This document shows positions 889 to 57,418 of a DNA stretch of 64,000 nucleotides, in pieces. Each line of letters starts with the position of its first letter. The stretch's first letter is position 1. This stretch comes from Octopus sinensis. Taxonomy: Eukaryota. A program made the position numbers and the translations under genes. The stretch spans positions 20,646,001-20,710,000 of the forward strand of contig NC_043005.1 of assembly GCF_006345805.1 (NCBI RefSeq), in the 5' to 3' direction. The notes beneath the pieces were generated by a model. It worked only from the letters and a program-made list of their open reading frames with translations, did not search any database and had not been told where the DNA came from.

Positions 889-1128
889 CTTCTCAAATCC
901 ATTTTGTGAAAATTAAAGATGCAGCTTTGAAAGTCTTTGGAAAAACATTGTTGGACAAGGAAAATGTAACAACAGAAGTTTGTGCACGAAAATGTTTGTC
1001 TGACGAAAATTGTTTATCATTTGAAATAACTAAAAAAAGAGGAAAATGTTATTTATCAAAAGAAGCTGCAGATTTCTCCAGGAAAATAAGTAAAGACAAA
1101 AGCAGAATTTATTACCAACGAGTAAAAT
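889..1128 (+). CDS. Exon A1, PAN/apple-like domain type A (240 nt)
   Basis: aatttcAG|CT TCT CAA...GTA AAA T|GTaatt; SQIHFVKIKDAALKVFGKTLLDKENVTTEVCARKCLSDENCLSFEITKKRGKCYLSK...YYQRVK; PAN motif C-x3-C-x5-C-x-SF-x8-C-x-L. Confidence 0.9.
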
Positions 1129-2062
1129 GTAATTATTCTTTGTATTTTATTATTGGATTCTCATAACCATTTTTTCTGAAATTTATATTTCCATTTGTAT
1201 TTCATAGAATATAGACATCAACAAATTTACCTGTAAGGATAGACATAAACATACTTTAGAAATAAGGCATGTTAAGCACTGTAAATACTGTTAGAGGATT
1301 CTCATACACCTTGAACACTATTATGTATGCTTGCAATCGTGTTTTGTCTCTTATAAGAAAGAAATCCCTTGTCCTTTTTCTTAAATCCAAACAGTAGTAG
1401 TGGTGGTGGTGATATCAATCCCAAAAAGGCGAAAGGCAAAGTTGACACCAGCAGTGTCTCAGCTTAGAATGTAATGAGTTTGAAGAGATACCATTATGTG
1501 GCATAGCTTATGCACATCATCTTGCCATCATGTCCTTCATAATCTGATATGCAAAATAAGAGAAAAAGTAATACCAATCTATGTAGTTGTGTATCTCCTA
1601 TATTTTGTTATGATTATTAGGGATGGATGCCCTTCCTATCACCAACCATTATACGACATGTAGAGATCCTTTTACCCATTCAACTGGAATTTTAAAAATT
1701 TGTCTGCCTGTAGTGAAGAATCCTCTCAACATAACATAGGTACCTATTCAGAATAGTTCCATGAATTTAAAAGCAAAACATCCAGCAATTTCACTCACTT
1801 TGATATAAAGGGATTTTGTCCTTTTCTATCAAAATCTTGAAACCACGAACAACAAGGAAAATTCACTAGATTTAATGATCTCAGTATTAGAATACTAGGA
1901 TATCAGTGCTGTTATGATGAATTTTTCTAGGTTGAAAAAAGGTGTGCCAAGCTAAATTCAGAACTTACTGCAATATTTTTCCTGGGCACCCTCAATAAAT
2001 TGAAGGTCATTAGTAGTTTGTGTTTATACAAAAACAATAGCCTAGGAATTTTATGTTGTGAA

Positions 2063-2465
2063 CGTGGCTGTGTGGTAAGTAGCTTGTTTACCAGCCACAT
2101 GGTTTTGGGTTCAATCCCACTGCGTGGCACCTTGGGCAAGTGTCTTCTACTATAGCCTCGGGCCGACCAAAGCCTTGTGAGTGGATTTGGTAGACGGAAA
2201 CTGAAAGAACCCCGTCGTATATATGTATATATATATATGCGTGTGTGTGTTTGTGTGTCTGTATTTGTCCCCTTAGCATTGCTTGACAACCGATGCTGGT
2301 GTGTTTATGTCCCCGTTACTTAGCGGTTCGGCAAAAAAGACCGATAAAATAAGTACTGGGCTTACAAAAGAATAAGTCCCGGGGTCGAGTTGCTCGATGA
2401 AAGGCGGTGCTCCAGCATGGCCGCAGTCAAATGACTGAAACAAGTAAAAAGAAAAAAAAGAAAAA
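2063..2465 (+). mobile_element. tRNA-derived SINE (family 1), full length
   Basis: A-box-like TGGCTGTGTGG, B-box-like GGTTCAATCCC, central (TA)/(TG) linker, tail CCAGCATGGCCGCAGTCAAATGACTGAAACAAG; near-identical copies at 7040, 32582 and 35553. Confidence 0.85.
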
Positions 2466-2469
2466 ATCC

Positions 2470-3230
2470 AAGTCATGAATAGATTTAGGAAAACTTGACA
2501 GTAATCTATAAAAAAATTAATTTAAAAATAATATTATTACCAATTTAACTACATTCAGCTGATGGAATGTTATCTAAGATTTGAAGTTAGGTATCGGATG
2601 GGCTACATTCCAACGGAGAACCTAACAAAGCAAACAGAAACCTTCATAGGAATTTCAAGTTCTGCCTTCAAACTATAACCAGAAATTTAATAAATGGTAT
2701 TACTAAAAGAATCTCAAATTTATTCTCAAATGAAGTTATTTTCGACAGCATTTTTTTATAGTACAAGGTATTAGTTAAGTTTCAATTTGGAGAGAAGTGA
2801 GCATGAACAGAGCATCCTCCAACTCAAAACCAGAAAGAATTAGAAAGATAATAACTTAATTCTTCCTTCAATCTGAATATTTCCATGAGCATAGCAAGGG
2901 AGTTTTTATCCATTTGTGAGGCTCACATAAGTACCACAAAATTAGGAATATTCATAGTGTTAAGGTTTGTTAGTCATGTCTGGATGACATAATTCTAGTA
3001 TTATGTTGCTATAAGAAAAGCATACAATTATCTGTAACTATTAAAATCAATCCACCTTTCTATTGAGAGAATTCTGCCTCTCTAAGGCAACAGTTTATAA
3101 AGCAGTTCTCACTGAACCTGATGGTTCCTGAATGAATTACATTGAACTTTTAGCCAATGGGCTTCAAAGAAAGATTCACTCAGTATTTATACTCCTTCAA
3201 GTTCATCCTACAAGGTAAAGTTCACGTATC
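2470..3230 (+). mobile_element. Degenerate Penelope-like element (PLE) fragment
   Basis: Broken frame ITRNLINGITKRISNLFSNEVIF resembling the PLE RT thumb region; homologous to 26470..27250. Confidence 0.5.
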
Positions 3231-3371
3231 TGTCCTGTTTTATCTGGAGATTTCTGGAACACAACAATGATCTATCAAGCATAACTTTGTACTTACTTGA
3301 CTAATCCATAGCCTATTTATCAGTGTCATTTTTTTTAATAAGCTATAAAAAAAAACTACATACAAGTAGTT

Positions 3372-3422
3372 TGTGTGTGTGTGTGTGTGTGTGTGTGTGT
3401 GTGTGTGTGTGTGTGTGTGTGT
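3372..3422. repeat. (TG)n microsatellite
   Basis: Perfect dinucleotide run. Confidence 0.95.
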
Positions 3423-55440: not shown

Positions 55441-55527
55441 TTTATTATTTTCTTCTTCTTCTTCTTCTTCTTCTTCTTCTTCTTCTTCTTCTTCTTATTA
55501 TTATTATTATTATTATTATTATTATTC

Positions 55528-56235
55528 CTTCTGTCTTCAAATTTTCTTCCATTTCTCGTCGAGTGTTTTCCGTACACCTAGGGCAGAGAAGCTTGTTGTA
55601 TGCATTCCCAGATTAAACATGCAAATTCACAGGTAAAATATGTATTTAAAAAATTTATGAATAAATAAATTCATGAATGGATATTGTTTTCACAGCGATA
55701 ATGCTCTTCTCAGTTCATGAGGCATTCCAGTCAACATGATTTTTTGCACTTCCTGTAGGGATGGTAAGCCTGGTATCATTTTCAAATAGGTTTCAGTACC
55801 TTTTTTTTATCATTCCTAGAGATCCCACAATCACTGGTACTGTAGTCGCCCTGAAAAGCCACATTTTTTCAATTTCCTTTAGCAAGTCCTTATATTTACT
55901 AATCTTGTCAAATTCTTTCGCCGCTATATTGTGATTGCTAGGAATACTCATGTCAATTAACAAACACATCTTTTTTGTCTGATCTTTTATGATAATATCG
56001 GTTTATTAGCTTTTATAGTTCTGTCGGTATGTACAGGGAAGTCCCACAGAATCAACACATTTTCTCCCTCAGTCACAGCTTCAGGATGGTGTTTATACCA
56101 TTTGACAGTGGTTTTGATTTTATAATGCCGACATATTGTCCAGTGTAAATACTGGCTGACTCTGTCATGTCTTGCTTTATATTCTGCAGGTGCCAGACTC
56201 TACATATGAGATTAGGTAGTCTATTGTTTCAATCT
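55528..56235 (-). mobile_element. R4/Dong-like 3' fragment (third family)
   Basis: RHDRVSQYLHWTICRHYKIK, KPILS/PDII-like and PVIVGSLG remnants; (ATT)n on both sides. Confidence 0.75.
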
Positions 56236-56311
56236 CATCATCATCATCATTATTATTATTATTATTATTATTATTATTATTATTATTATTATTATTATTA
56301 TTATTATTATT

Positions 56312-56530
56312 AAGACTGTGAGCTGGCAGAATCATTAGCTTGCCAGGCAAAATGCTTGGCAACATTTTGTCTATCCTTATGTTCTGTGTTCAAATTCTGC
56401 TCAGGTTGACTTTGCCTTTCATTCTTTCAGGGTCAATAAATGAAATAGCAGTCAAGTACTGGGGTCAGAGTGATCGACTATCCTCCTCCCTATAAATTCC
56501 AGGCATTGTGCCTATAGTAGAAAGGATTAT
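56312..56530 (+). mobile_element. tRNA-derived SINE family 2
   Basis: gagctggcagaatcattagc head, gttcaaattc B-box-like, gactttgcctttcat body; follows (ATT)n. Confidence 0.65.
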
Positions 56531-57187
56531 TATTATTAATCATCATGAGTCATCATCATCATCATCATCATCATCATCATTATTTCATAGATATTTTAAA
56601 AATATTAGATAATTATGCAGATGTACAAGTAATCAAAATTTTGAATAAAATATGAGAAAGCTATCTTGTGCTTTGTTGTGAACAGGGTCAAACAAATCCA
56701 TCCATAAAATAGTTTTTCCAGCATAAAACTCCCTTCCCAGAAGTAATGTGAATTTTCGCACATCATGGGATCTTCTTTGAACTTTGCCTCAGAGCTTAGG
56801 TTGTAGAATATCCATACATACATTCTTCTTCTCAGGGTGTGTTTTTAACATTGAATAGCCATAACAACACTTGATACATTGGTTGGCCACTTGTTTAAGG
56901 GAGTGTTGACCCTACAAAATTACAACATTAGAAGAGAGACATATTGTAGAAGTACAAGTGTTGTCAGGAGCCTAAATATTGAGACATGGTTTCAAATAAG
57001 TCTGAAGATGTTCTACAACTCATATGCATTCTGATTAGTGTGTCATTTTGTGAATCAATTATTTGTTGATAATAAATTGTCCATTTACAAAATTATACCC
57101 TGTTTGCTTTACAATATTTATTGTGTGTGTGTTTGTGTGGGTGGATGAGTATAAACTGTATTTCTTGGTTTCTATTTCTTTCCCCAG

Positions 57188-57418
57188 CTGACACCCCTTT
57201 GAAGCTTAAGAAAGTTAGCATACCACAGAAGGATACTTTACAACAGCTTAAACAGAAGACCTTAACTGAGTGTAATGAAGCTTGTCAACAATATGAAGGA
57301 TGTAATTCTTATGAGTACAATGAGAAGGATAAACTGTGTGGTCTAAGCAATGTGACACAATTGACTAGTGAACTTAAACCCATCATTGGAAATTGGGATG
57401 TTTATCTCATTAGCCCAG
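57188..57418 (+). CDS. Exon B4, PAN type B (231 nt)
   Basis: tccccAG|CT GAC...AGC CCA G|GTcagt; DTPLKLKKVSIPQKDTLQQLKQKTLTECNEACQQYEGCNSYEYNEKDKLCGLSNVTQLTSELKPIIGNWDVYLISPG. Confidence 0.9.

Follow-up and report, generated by a model that had tools for sequence, protein, structure and literature searches.

A one-domain-per-exon locus of Octopus sinensis is part of a far larger array of PAN-PAN-Sushi exons that ends in a GON domain

Results

Twelve one-domain exons in the window

The window, by which we mean the whole 64,000-nt stretch of Octopus sinensis contig NC_043005.1 that was analysed (positions 20,646,001 to 20,710,000), contains twelve exons on the forward strand between positions 889 and 57418. 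A sequence check and tblastn found all twelve where a preliminary description had placed them, in the order it gave, ABS-ABS-ABSS-AB, in which A and B are two types of PAN/apple domain and S is a Sushi/CCP domain. Each exon has a one-to-one ortholog at O. bimaculoides LOC128248837 (L001 below), with 87-96% nucleotide identity, the same order and all AG/GT signals retained; the ortholog of the last one, B4, falls between LOC128248837 and LOC128248838, in sequence annotated as "intergenic". The exons are as follows.

A1: 889-1128, + strand, 240 nt; PAN/apple type A (4 Cys, basic, pI 9.6), phase 1-1; by Pfam and tblastn; ortholog L001 19743-19982, 93.8% nt
B1: 4265-4498, + strand, 234 nt; PAN/apple type B (4 Cys + Trp, acidic); by Pfam and tblastn; ortholog L001 21808-22041, 90.2% nt
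S1: 11657-11827, + strand, 171 nt; Sushi/CCP (4 Cys + Trp); by Pfam and tblastn; ortholog L001 23236-23406
A2: 16049-16288, + strand, 240 nt; PAN type A; by tblastn; ortholog L001 24703-24942, 94.2% nt
B2: 21894-22127, + strand, 234 nt; PAN type B; by tblastn; ortholog L001 27292-27525, 94.4% nt
S2: 23678-23848, + strand, 171 nt; Sushi/CCP; by tblastn; ortholog L001 28886-29056
A3: 25137-25376, + strand, 240 nt; PAN type A; by tblastn; ortholog L001 30328-30567
B3: 31551-31784, + strand, 234 nt; PAN type B; by tblastn; ortholog L001 32322-32555
S3: 40398-40568, + strand, 171 nt; Sushi/CCP; by tblastn; ortholog L001 34022-34192; absent from O. vulgaris model CAI9728790.1
S4: 43032-43202, + strand, 171 nt; Sushi/CCP, second of a tandem S-S pair; by tblastn; ortholog L001 35197-35367, 96.5% nt
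A4: 48240-48476, + strand, 237 nt variant; PAN type A; by tblastn; ortholog L001 35656-35892
B4: 57188-57418, + strand, 231 nt variant; PAN type B; by tblastn; ortholog L001 38763-38993

A polypyrimidine tract and AG precede each exon and a GT donor follows it (12/12), with a donor sequence that differs by class: gtaattat for A, gtcagta or gttagta for B, and gtaatgta or gtaatatg for S. Because every exon length is divisible by 3 and the 2574 nt, once joined, are open in frame 2 only, all introns are in phase 1, and the correspondence of one exon to one domain, with phase 1-1 boundaries, extends to all twelve. The joined exons are free of stops, as had been described; the 858 residues given for the product are 857 full codons, and 858 is reached by including the split codon. 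Searches of both strands of the whole window with domain peptides (tblastn) found no A, B or S copies beyond the twelve, and a tblastn scan of the window found no GON domain. The heavy load of transposable elements noted in the introns is borne out on the - strand by an ORF for a reverse transcriptase (51377-53851) and a zf-RVT piece (54497-55375), and the introns also contain long (TA)n arrays. The window holds an internal 56.5-kb piece of a far larger octopus array of one-domain exons, whose extent is described below.

Domain identity

The earlier domain calls proved right both by Pfam, with scores above the gathering threshold, and by structural matching. The InterPro/HMMER-type check that had been proposed for the spliced product, run here with Pfam, returned PAN_1 (PF00024) in eight stretches (215 bits against a cut-off of 21.4, E=6e-65) and Sushi (PF00084) in four (E=1e-10), values that exclude a chance origin. 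Single exons also passed: A1 and B1 scored 39.7 and 29.3 bits against PAN_1 (cut-off 21.4), and S1 scored 24.8 bits against Sushi (cut-off 20.7). For the orthologous ABS unit, AlphaFold (pLDDT 83) predicts one helix plus strands in each PAN domain. The best Foldseek matches of this model in the PDB, at probability 1.0, were the apple domains of factor XI and prekallikrein, Toxoplasma MIC4, Sarcocystis SML-2, plasminogen and the HGF N domain, while a PDB sequence search matched MIC4 (best, E=3e-6), CR1, CR2 and DAF.

The cysteine pattern C-x3-C-x5-C-x11-C is invariant in both A and B across 18/18 aligned units and represents two core disulfides; in the S module, C164, C190, C200, W206 and C213 are invariant in the aligned units. 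The array domains share the PAN/apple fold and its core disulfides with factor XI, plasma prekallikrein and the N (PAN) domains of HGF and plasminogen, but at an identity of 10-21%, and the array has neither kringle nor protease domain. The "apple" subtype proper, in which six cysteines include a third disulfide joining the N and C termini, was rejected: each A or B exon has only four, like the HGF/plasminogen N domain. MIC4 and SML-2 likewise consist of tandem PAN/apple modules and serve as multivalent carbohydrate binders; they belong to an unrelated lineage and lack CCP and GON modules. The S exon is a canonical CCP with four Cys and a Trp, as in CR1, CR2 and DAF, and CR1 shares with the array its long homologous higher-order repeats.

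An extracellular location, suggested in the preliminary description, is a fair inference because a paralog carries a signal peptide (see below) and the spliced window product contains 5.6% Cys and 14 sequons for N-glycosylation. The role in recognition or adhesion that was proposed along with it is putative. The A modules are basic and the B modules mostly acidic.

The array is already predicted in public genomes under misleading names

The exons had been assigned to an unknown family, their architecture not being recognised as that of a named gene. That view was unsupported or incomplete: they are already contained in predicted O. vulgaris CAI9728790.1 and O. bimaculoides LOC128248837, and the family includes GON-Abd-1/2. 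The window exons are 95-100% identical per exon, at the amino acid level, to CAI9728790.1 (4470 aa, automatically named "SVEP1-like"), which omits S3 and part of A4. The array is thus already predicted in public octopus genomes, yet uncharacterised there, and every ortholog we found is an uncharacterised protein; one-to-one orthology to a characterised protein, which would have counted against the preliminary description, was not found. Support for splicing comes entirely from gene models of other annotators; among the protein database matches, none was a short spliced fragment of the array gene assembled from reads. Multi-unit arrays turned up in Octopus species only in our sequence searches, in agreement with the proposed lineage-specific expansion.

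In three Octopus genomes the gene models are broken up and carry misleading names ("SVEP1-like", "ADAMTS20-like", "uncharacterized"). We rejected the identity with SVEP1 given automatically to O. vulgaris and O. sinensis models: in those of 4470 and 4283 aa, PAN, Sushi and GON are the only domains that Pfam detects, and "SVEP1-like" is a misnomer because VWA, EGF, pentraxin and HYR domains are absent. The array also differs from CCP-repeat proteins, SVEP1 included, in that its CCPs alternate with PAN pairs. Identity with ADAMTS9/20, the automatic name of proteins P0163 and P0167, was rejected as well. The GON domain at the C-terminal end is shared by ADAMTS9, ADAMTS20, GON-1, the array and the small paralog, but reprolysin, disintegrin-like and TSP1 modules are all absent in P0167 and P0164. 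The array proteins and the small paralog are not proteases.

Extent and continuity of the array

In both O. bimaculoides and O. vulgaris, the ABS(S) exon array stays on one strand and crosses annotated gene boundaries. It spans at least 0.57 Mb in O. bimaculoides, where the interval 88.248-88.826 Mb is covered in samples by four loci (L001, L003, L004 and L002), all on one strand, and intact unannotated exons lie between and upstream of the gene models. A GON domain closes the array there (L002), next to an unrelated CACHD1-like gene, and GON is also found at the 3' end in O. vulgaris (P0167). The GON of the array is single and encoded by four exons; like that of the small paralog, it belongs to PF08685 (Pfam, E=1e-32 to 1e-34). 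Following the array further in these two species, in the spirit of the window extension that had been suggested as a check, located the 3' end but neither the 5' end nor a signal peptide of the array. The array models of O. vulgaris total at least 20,400 aa, and recent higher-order copies of 13 exons occur inside the array.

Is the array one gene or several? On one reading, several separate genes lie in tandem, each encoding roughly 1-5 thousand residues and each having a promoter and a signal-peptide exon of its own; the window would then fall inside one mid-sized member. We give this reading a little less than an even chance. Three annotation pipelines do divide the array into several models, the recent 13-exon duplications could bring promoters along, and the viability of a short form is evident from a nearby gene with a single unit. 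Against it, all annotated models in the array start at a Met codon inside a domain and none has a signal peptide. Gaps of 0.5-5.4 kb, a length that ordinary introns at this locus also reach, separate consecutive O. vulgaris models (2247|4470|861|857|3597|..|4087|4283 aa), and A|B pairs are cut at the model boundaries. The O. sinensis RefSeq model P0007 joins exons from both sides of one such boundary, the "intergenic" gaps contain intact unannotated exons, and only one GON end is seen. A search of about 330 kb of sampled array, a test of low power, found no signal-peptide-like exon homologous to that of the paralog. Because of their internal Met starts and the boundaries that cut A|B pairs, we regard the annotated "genes" as fragments.

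The opposite reading, which we put forward tentatively and at clearly less than even chance, is that the whole array is one transcription unit, no less than 0.57 Mb long in O. bimaculoides and well above 1 Mb in O. vulgaris. It would comprise about 270-300 one-domain exons and encode a secreted protein of about 20,000 residues, with some 90 PAN-PAN-Sushi cassettes and a GON cap. Such a gene would be specific to the Octopus lineage, grown from the neighbouring 465-aa gene, and would have fast-evolving surfaces, with in-frame exon skipping available for isoform diversity.

A small GON-domain paralog

That neighbour, O. bimaculoides LOC106874924, encodes a signal peptide, A, B, S and GON in 465 aa with one exon per domain, and lies on the same chromosome and strand as the array, about 114 kb upstream of its sampled part. 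It is the ortholog of Abdopus "GON-Abd-1"; its family comprises GON-Abd-1/-2 of Abdopus aculeatus (UniRef R4G2C1, R4G7D0), LOC106874924, O. sinensis LOC115215708 and O. vulgaris CAI9728787.1. A protein of the GON-Abd-1 type with the architecture A-B-S-G (P0162) matches the array exons at E=1e-60. GON-Abd-type proteins have PAN-A, PAN-B and Sushi in the same order as the array, each on its own exon; these modules are on average 46-53% identical to the array copies, and the GON domain is 60% identical to the one that closes the array. They differ in having a signal peptide and a single A-B-S unit, which the array repeats many tens of times, and their domains are further from the array copies than the array copies are from each other (mean 50-63% identity). 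GON-Abd-1/2 were reportedly first recovered from octopus posterior salivary (venom) gland transcripts; Ruder and colleagues are reported to have linked "GON-Abd" to venom-gland transcriptomes in 2013.

Conserved scaffold, changing surfaces

Compared with their O. bimaculoides orthologs, the window exons show 211 nucleotide differences, spread 79/65/67 over the three codon positions, and a dN/dS of 0.82. The preliminary observation that frame and Cys/Trp pattern are kept in every copy extends to this comparison between species: 0/60 Cys/Trp residues changed (11.7 expected), no stops arose against 9.8 expected by simulation (P about 2e-4), and gap events numbered 0 in 2574 nt of exon versus 59 in 3462 nt of flanking intron. 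Exon nucleotide identity (91.8%) is not higher than that of the flanking introns (about 90%). A second set of 16 exons, compared between O. bimaculoides and O. vulgaris, gave a dN/dS of 0.81 with 78/79 Cys/Trp kept. By column class, omega was 0.47 for the scaffold and 1.25 for variable columns, the latter not significantly above 1 (bootstrap 0.64-2.8). Strongly relaxed constraint would equally account for a dN/dS near 0.8 and for the even distribution of changes among codon positions. That the disulfide scaffold is conserved while the surfaces evolve near-neutrally or diversify would suggest a binding protein engaged in an interaction that is changing or antagonistic.

One such interaction would be that of a saliva or venom component of the posterior salivary gland, binding, for example, prey surface glycans or haemolymph proteins, with a possible relation to the octopus "cephalotoxins". 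Secreted proteins in antagonistic interactions typically combine fast surface change with a conserved set of disulfides, as here, and saliva is one candidate site because the closest named relatives, GON-Abd-1/2, are reportedly from posterior venom-gland transcriptomes. The interest of this candidate is that no sequence has ever been obtained for the proteinaceous toxins of octopus saliva, and homologs of SE-cephalotoxin are restricted to squid and cuttlefish (bioRxiv 10.64898/2026.04.09.716377). SE-cephalotoxin, however, has a different domain set, namely LDL-A, TSP1, EGF and Sushi (bioRxiv 10.64898/2026.04.09.716377). Furthermore, PAN, GON and Sushi proteins go unmentioned in the searchable octopus venom literature, and occurrence in a gland transcriptome does not equal toxicity. 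We consider a venom role unlikely.

Still less probable, in our estimate, is an immune or self/non-self recognition molecule, a Dscam-like secreted pattern-recognition protein with many isoforms from alternatively spliced exons. Any subset of phase 1-1 exons would be in frame, S3 and part of A4 are indeed left out of the O. vulgaris model, and amino acid turnover is high; innate-immune binders often contain CCP and PAN modules, and CR1, CR2 and DAF are among the PDB matches. But the skipped exons may be annotation errors, and a mean identity of 50-63% among array copies is what old duplicates, not a maintained cassette set, would be expected to show. Finally, a decaying array of dead duplicates that merely look like exons, which the dN/dS, the even codon positions and the unexceptional exon identity would suit, is very improbable: 28 exon pairs between species are free of stops, frameshifts and lost splice sites and keep 138/139 Cys/Trp, where simulation for the window set alone predicts some 10 stops and the loss of some 12 Cys/Trp, and all 59 gap events fell in the intron flanks.

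Discussion

The product is probably a very large, secreted, glycosylated, multivalent binding protein encoded by a continuous PAN-PAN-Sushi array ending in GON, its binding role being suggested by the domain types. The array runs as one continuous same-strand series from downstream of the signal peptide-A-B-S-GON paralog to the single four-exon GON domain. The predicted chain would be locked by disulfides and N-glycosylated, with basic A alternating with mostly acidic B PAN domains and CCPs as spacers. It may bind glycans or proteins multivalently, as a lectin-like, agglutinating or matrix/mucus-type scaffold, in which stiff domain cores would be conserved and surfaces would be free to change or be undergoing diversification.

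Symmetric exons offer a route to such a protein. Duplication or skipping of a phase 1-1 exon would leave the reading frame intact, and because every exon is of this kind, a single cassette could have grown to hundreds of exons, including the 13-exon copies. The locus would be a clear example of symmetric-phase one-domain exons letting a small secreted gene become a very large repeat array in one animal lineage. Kinship with GON-domain proteins of reported venom-gland origin makes saliva a candidate site of action.

Merging the fragmented models would alter gene counts and may expose one of the largest known coding units. If the array is a single transcription unit, its product would rank among the largest animal proteins, as an invention of the Octopus lineage. 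Drosophila Dumpy, hemicentin and large mucins are giant modular secreted matrix proteins. Read as one gene, the array would likewise have a secreted product that exceeds 10,000 residues and consists of tandem disulfide-rich modules with a distinct C-terminal domain; the module types are different, and the array contains no ZP, EGF or mucin domains.

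Twelve intact module exons in the window

A six-frame scan of the window brought up twelve open stretches on the plus strand with recurrent cysteine patterns, whose ends we set at AG and GT.

Module exons of the window (A and B, PAN/apple-type classes; S, Sushi/CCP class)
889-1128, + strand, exon A1, 240 nt
4265-4498, + strand, exon B1, 234 nt
11657-11827, + strand, exon S1, 171 nt
16049-16288, + strand, exon A2, 240 nt
21894-22127, + strand, exon B2, 234 nt
23678-23848, + strand, exon S2, 171 nt
25137-25376, + strand, exon A3, 240 nt
31551-31784, + strand, exon B3, 234 nt
40398-40568, + strand, exon S3, 171 nt
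43032-43202, + strand, exon S4, 171 nt
48240-48476, + strand, exon A4, 237 nt
57188-57418, + strand, exon B4, 231 nt

All twelve have a pyrimidine tract 5' of the AG and a donor specific to their exon class. Because every exon length is divisible by three and the spliced 2574 nt is open in one frame only, starting with two codon-completing bases, every intron is of phase 1. When domain peptides were run by tblastn against both strands of the 64 kb, we recovered exactly these twelve copies, with no further or degenerate domain exon and no GON exon on either strand of the window. A profile search of the spliced 857 aa against Pfam returned PAN_1 (E=6e-65, eight stretches) and Sushi (E=1e-10, four stretches), and individual exons exceed the curated cut-offs by themselves. 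We confirm the feature as real and its domain reading as correct: the preliminary description, which had read 889-57418 as a spliceable ABS-ABS-ABSS-AB series, is correct in every detail that the exon scan, splice sites, frame and tblastn could check, and the Pfam matches bear out its assignment of the exons to PAN-A, PAN-B and Sushi classes.

Across 18 aligned A-B-S units, four cysteines in A, four in B, and four cysteines plus a tryptophan in S are invariant. Having four cysteines where true apple domains have six, A and B fall into the HGF/plasminogen "N-domain" type, which has the same 4-Cys pattern. For structural comparison we modelled the orthologous A-B-S unit of O. bimaculoides, which is 83% identical to the window unit. 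In the AlphaFold model (mean pLDDT 83), each PAN consists of one helix plus strands and the third module is all-beta; the closest PDB structures are factor XI/prekallikrein apple domains, Toxoplasma MIC4, the Sarcocystis lectin SML-2, plasminogen and the HGF N domain. Among solved chains compared by sequence, B comes closest to MIC4, and S to CR1, CR2 and DAF. A exons encode basic modules (pI about 9.5), B exons mostly acidic ones. Lysine makes up 14% of the window product and cysteine 5.6%, and the product has 14 N-glycosylation sequons.

Orthologs in other Octopus genomes

A homolog search returned Octopus proteins only. The best match (84% identity) was the O. bimaculoides LOC128248837 protein, P0001, whose sequence follows the window order A-B-S-A-B-S-A-B-S-S-A with the same junctions as those derived here. 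Compared as DNA, the window exons each pair best with a single exon of the O. bimaculoides locus L001; these are collinear, 87-96% identical and without gaps, and AG/GT is retained. In O. vulgaris, a cluster look-up identified CAI9728790.1 (P0154, 4470 aa, automatically named "SVEP1-like"), with 95-100% amino acid identity to the window exons. The window can accordingly be assigned to the O. vulgaris/sinensis lineage, though it is not the exact sequence on which P0154 was built. Relative to the window, P0154 lacks S3 (40398-40568) and the 3' two-thirds of A4 (48240-48476); it also uses an internal donor in A1. These departures could be real exon skipping, which is conceivable because all exons are phase 1-1, or annotation error. 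Spliced read-assembly fragments of the gene were not found in the protein database by homolog search, and none of the papers searched links octopus with PAN/Sushi/GON proteins.

Exon maintenance and selection

The window and O. bimaculoides exons differ at 211 of 2574 nt, split 79/65/67 over the three codon positions, with a dN/dS of 0.82. Their dS (0.102) equals that between O. vulgaris and O. bimaculoides at other array exons (0.099). At 91.8%, exon identity does not exceed the value of about 90% for 150 nt of flanking intron. The differences include no stops, no indels, no lost splice sites and no change at any of 60 Cys/Trp positions. When the same number of substitutions was placed at random, a mean of 9.8 stops arose, only 0.02% of trials were stop-free, and 11.7 Cys/Trp changes were expected against the zero observed. 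Similarly, we counted 59 gap events in 3462 nt of intron flank against none in the exons. An independent set of 16 exons orthologous between O. bimaculoides and O. vulgaris (1028 codons) gave a dN/dS of 0.81, with 78 of 79 Cys/Trp residues retained. The intact frame, splice sites and Cys/Trp residues, taken with a dN/dS near 0.8, show that the exons are under firm selection for frame, splicing and fold, and that surface residues evolve at or above roughly the neutral rate. When columns were binned by their conservation in paralogs left out of the test, omega was 0.47 at scaffold columns, 1.16 at intermediate and 1.25 at variable ones. With a bootstrap interval of 0.64-2.8 at the variable columns, positive selection on surface residues is possible but not established.

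The window belongs to a longer array

Loci around four O. bimaculoides gene models sample 88.248-88.826 Mb of CM046610.1, and across this interval we found an unbroken, one-strand series of A, B and S exons. Intact exons lie in unannotated DNA upstream of LOC128248837, and an ortholog of window B4, an S exon and an A exon lie between LOC128248837 and LOC128248838. At L001 35892-44021 the annotated gene boundary passes over intact exons. A 511-N assembly gap coincides with the break of the first model. At its 3' end, the array runs into four GON-domain exons in LOC106869402; the gene after it, CACHD1-like, is unrelated. O. vulgaris OX597823.1 carries successive same-strand models of 2247, 4470 (416 kb), 861, 857, 3597, 4087 and 4283 aa, the last spanning 252 kb with GON at its end. 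These seven total at least 20,400 aa, one stretch between the 3597- and 4087-aa models being unseen. Pfam matches in the long models are PAN, Sushi and GON only, with no VWA/TSP1-type extras, which makes "SVEP1-like" and "ADAMTS20-like", the names given in databases, misnomers. Matches to MBD, SH3_3, Get5_N, Nup188_N, Binary_toxB and DUF families are artefacts: no single stretch passes alone, and they appear in long models because weak matches are summed over many repeats.

Between residues about 1500 and 3200 of P0154, many domains have 91-98% identical partners at an offset of 912 aa, which corresponds to a 13-exon higher-order repeat, ABS-ABS-ABS-ABSS. Such near-identity shows that the array kept growing recently, by segmental duplication inside the array. 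The best paralogous block for the window is only 71% identical, and by this measure the window block is an older part of the array.

One gene or several

No reading of the array reaches even odds: several separate genes, as the annotations have it, are slightly the most probable, one unit coding for some 20,000 aa comes close behind, and intermediate arrangements take the rest of the probability. The O. vulgaris models are separated by gaps of 0.5-5.4 kb, and both of the two boundaries that we inspected (L005 1640/9944 and L008 77013/85502) split an A|B pair: the upstream model stops after A and the next "starts" at a Met within the following B. At one of these boundaries the O. sinensis RefSeq model P0007 splices exactly from one side to the other, joining A and B exons that are given to two genes in O. 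vulgaris. None of the array models inspected begins with a signal peptide, and no relative of the signal-peptide exon of the small gene described below was found in about 330 kb of array with a query of only 28 aa.

A hydrophobic in-frame stretch 5' of the A exons resembles a signal peptide. The in-frame ATG at 816, upstream of A1, would yield the signal-peptide-like product MTQGEVSCLIVVVVFIGLNFTLISA, which is missing from most copies. A exons are rejected as alternative first exons: such an ATG is present in only 3 of 31, and the O. bimaculoides ortholog lacks the one at 816. The ends of the introns, about 30-60 nt 5' of the exons, are conserved per exon class across old paralogs (for example at window 816-888, 15982-16048, 25040-25136 and 48143-48239). 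In-frame translation gives ..LLLFFIDLNFTL(T/I)LD before A exons, ..SIKCISCFLFLFPA before B exons, and a stop followed by YQFLLSIPV before S exons. Because S and B exons also have class-specific conserved 3' intron ends, the conserved sequence before A exons is most simply a long polypyrimidine/branch region.

A single-unit GON paralog

A search with the unannotated upstream O. bimaculoides exons did not return an upstream model for the array; it returned GON-Abd-1 of Abdopus aculeatus (P0162, 465 aa), laid out as signal peptide, A, B, S and GON. Its 90% cluster includes GON-Abd-2 and several orthologs: LOC106874924 of O. bimaculoides, an O. sinensis protein, and CAI9728787.1 of O. vulgaris, whose accession precedes that of the window's gene, CAI9728790.1, by three. 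LOC106874924 occupies 88.124-88.135 Mb, on the strand of the record that also carries the array. The sampled array begins about 114 kb downstream of it, with an NDUFV1-like gene between them. As in the array, one domain is one exon, and the signal peptide is on small 5' exons. The small-gene domains have a mean identity of 46-53% to array copies, which are 50-63% identical to one another, and its GON shares 60% identity with the GON that ends the array. The simplest history would be a duplication of the small gene followed by runaway internal exon duplication. The preliminary description had placed the gene in an unknown, unnamed family; it is already predicted in three Octopus genomes, though fragmented and misnamed, and the GON-Abd-1 match places it with named GON-domain proteins.

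More distant cephalopod proteins share the modules, which shows that these are older than the expansion. They include a cuttlefish B-S-S-GON protein and an A-B-mucin-WSC protein of Octopus. Argonauta proteins start with signal peptide-A-B, a "zonadhesin-like" one among them, and an ADAMTS1-like protease carries two PANs of the B type; the di-PAN/GON relatives are P0027 and P0089 (Argonauta hians), P0103 and P0091 (O. bimaculoides) and P0041 (Acanthosepion pharaonis). The A-B di-PAN architectures read signal peptide-A-B-A-B, signal peptide-A-B-Thr-rich linker-WSC x3 and, in the "zonadhesin-like" protein, signal peptide-A-B fused to VWD/C8/TIL/VWA. The lineage expansion proposed from the window agrees with the finding of complete multi-unit arrays in Octopus species only, an absence elsewhere that is weak evidence given the thin annotation of other cephalopods.

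Proposed product and possible role

The array is a very long series of intact extracellular-type module exons with a conserved scaffold, a GON end and a secreted paralog. PAN pairs elsewhere bind glycans, heparin or proteins. The product would be a secreted, glycosylated chain with CCP modules as spacers between PAN pairs; pairs so spaced could give high-avidity multivalent binding, and such a binder might serve as a lectin-like agglutinin or a matrix/mucus scaffold. In-frame skipping of the phase 1-1 exons could yield isoforms differing in length. What appears to be new here is how large and continuous the array is, its origin beside a single-unit paralog, and the pairing of a strictly conserved scaffold with a dN/dS of about 0.8.

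GON-domain proteins were reportedly first seen among venom-gland transcripts. In their 2013 transcriptome study of the coleoid posterior venom gland, Ruder et al. reportedly listed a "GON-domain" class, and we take the GON-Abd names to originate there. Passages of PMC4280546 and PMC4619613 cite Ruder et al. 2013 (J Mol Evol 76:192). According to a 2026 preprint, SE-cephalotoxin homologs occur in squid and cuttlefish only, and the sequences of octopus cephalotoxins are unknown (bioRxiv 10.64898/2026.04.09.716377). Given the GON-Abd link to the venom gland and octopus cephalotoxins of no known sequence, a salivary role for the array product would be a legitimate hypothesis.

Introns and mobile elements

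The same twelve exons span 56.5 kb in the window (889-57418) and 19.3 kb in L001 (19743-38993). For sixteen further orthologous exons the spans are 94 kb in O. vulgaris (L005) and 30 kb in O. bimaculoides (L004). The O. vulgaris lineage has introns about 3x longer, unless repeats are collapsed in the N-gapped O. bimaculoides assembly.

The window has a G+C content of 35%. Its introns hold a reverse-transcriptase ORF and a zf-RVT piece, in keeping with the heavy transposable-element load first described. Most of the LINE-like fragments, recognised by eye, have no Pfam match.

Mobile-element and microsatellite features of the window
51377-53851, - strand, intron A4-B4, reverse-transcriptase ORF (RVT_1 E=2e-30, plus zf-RVT; 825-codon open stretch)
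54497-55375, - strand, intron A4-B4, second zf-RVT fragment, near the RVT_1 ORF
27893-28420, 31776-31955, 45232-45495 and 62236-63065, + strand, LINE C-terminal-like ORF fragments
34468-35004 and 37225-37908, - strand, LINE C-terminal-like ORF fragments
5934-6285, 35062-35552, 35986-36451 and 38884-39793, long intronic (TA)n and (TATA/TATG)n microsatellites

The element in intron A4-B4 is a non-LTR retrotransposon, opposite in strand to the exons, and its long open frame suggests a young insertion. The LINE-like fragment at 31776-31955 begins 8 nt upstream of the B3 donor, and Pfam marks 62236-62547 as a PHD-finger-like ORF (E=6e-6). The microsatellite arrays account for the (IY)n and (CV)n runs in every translation frame.
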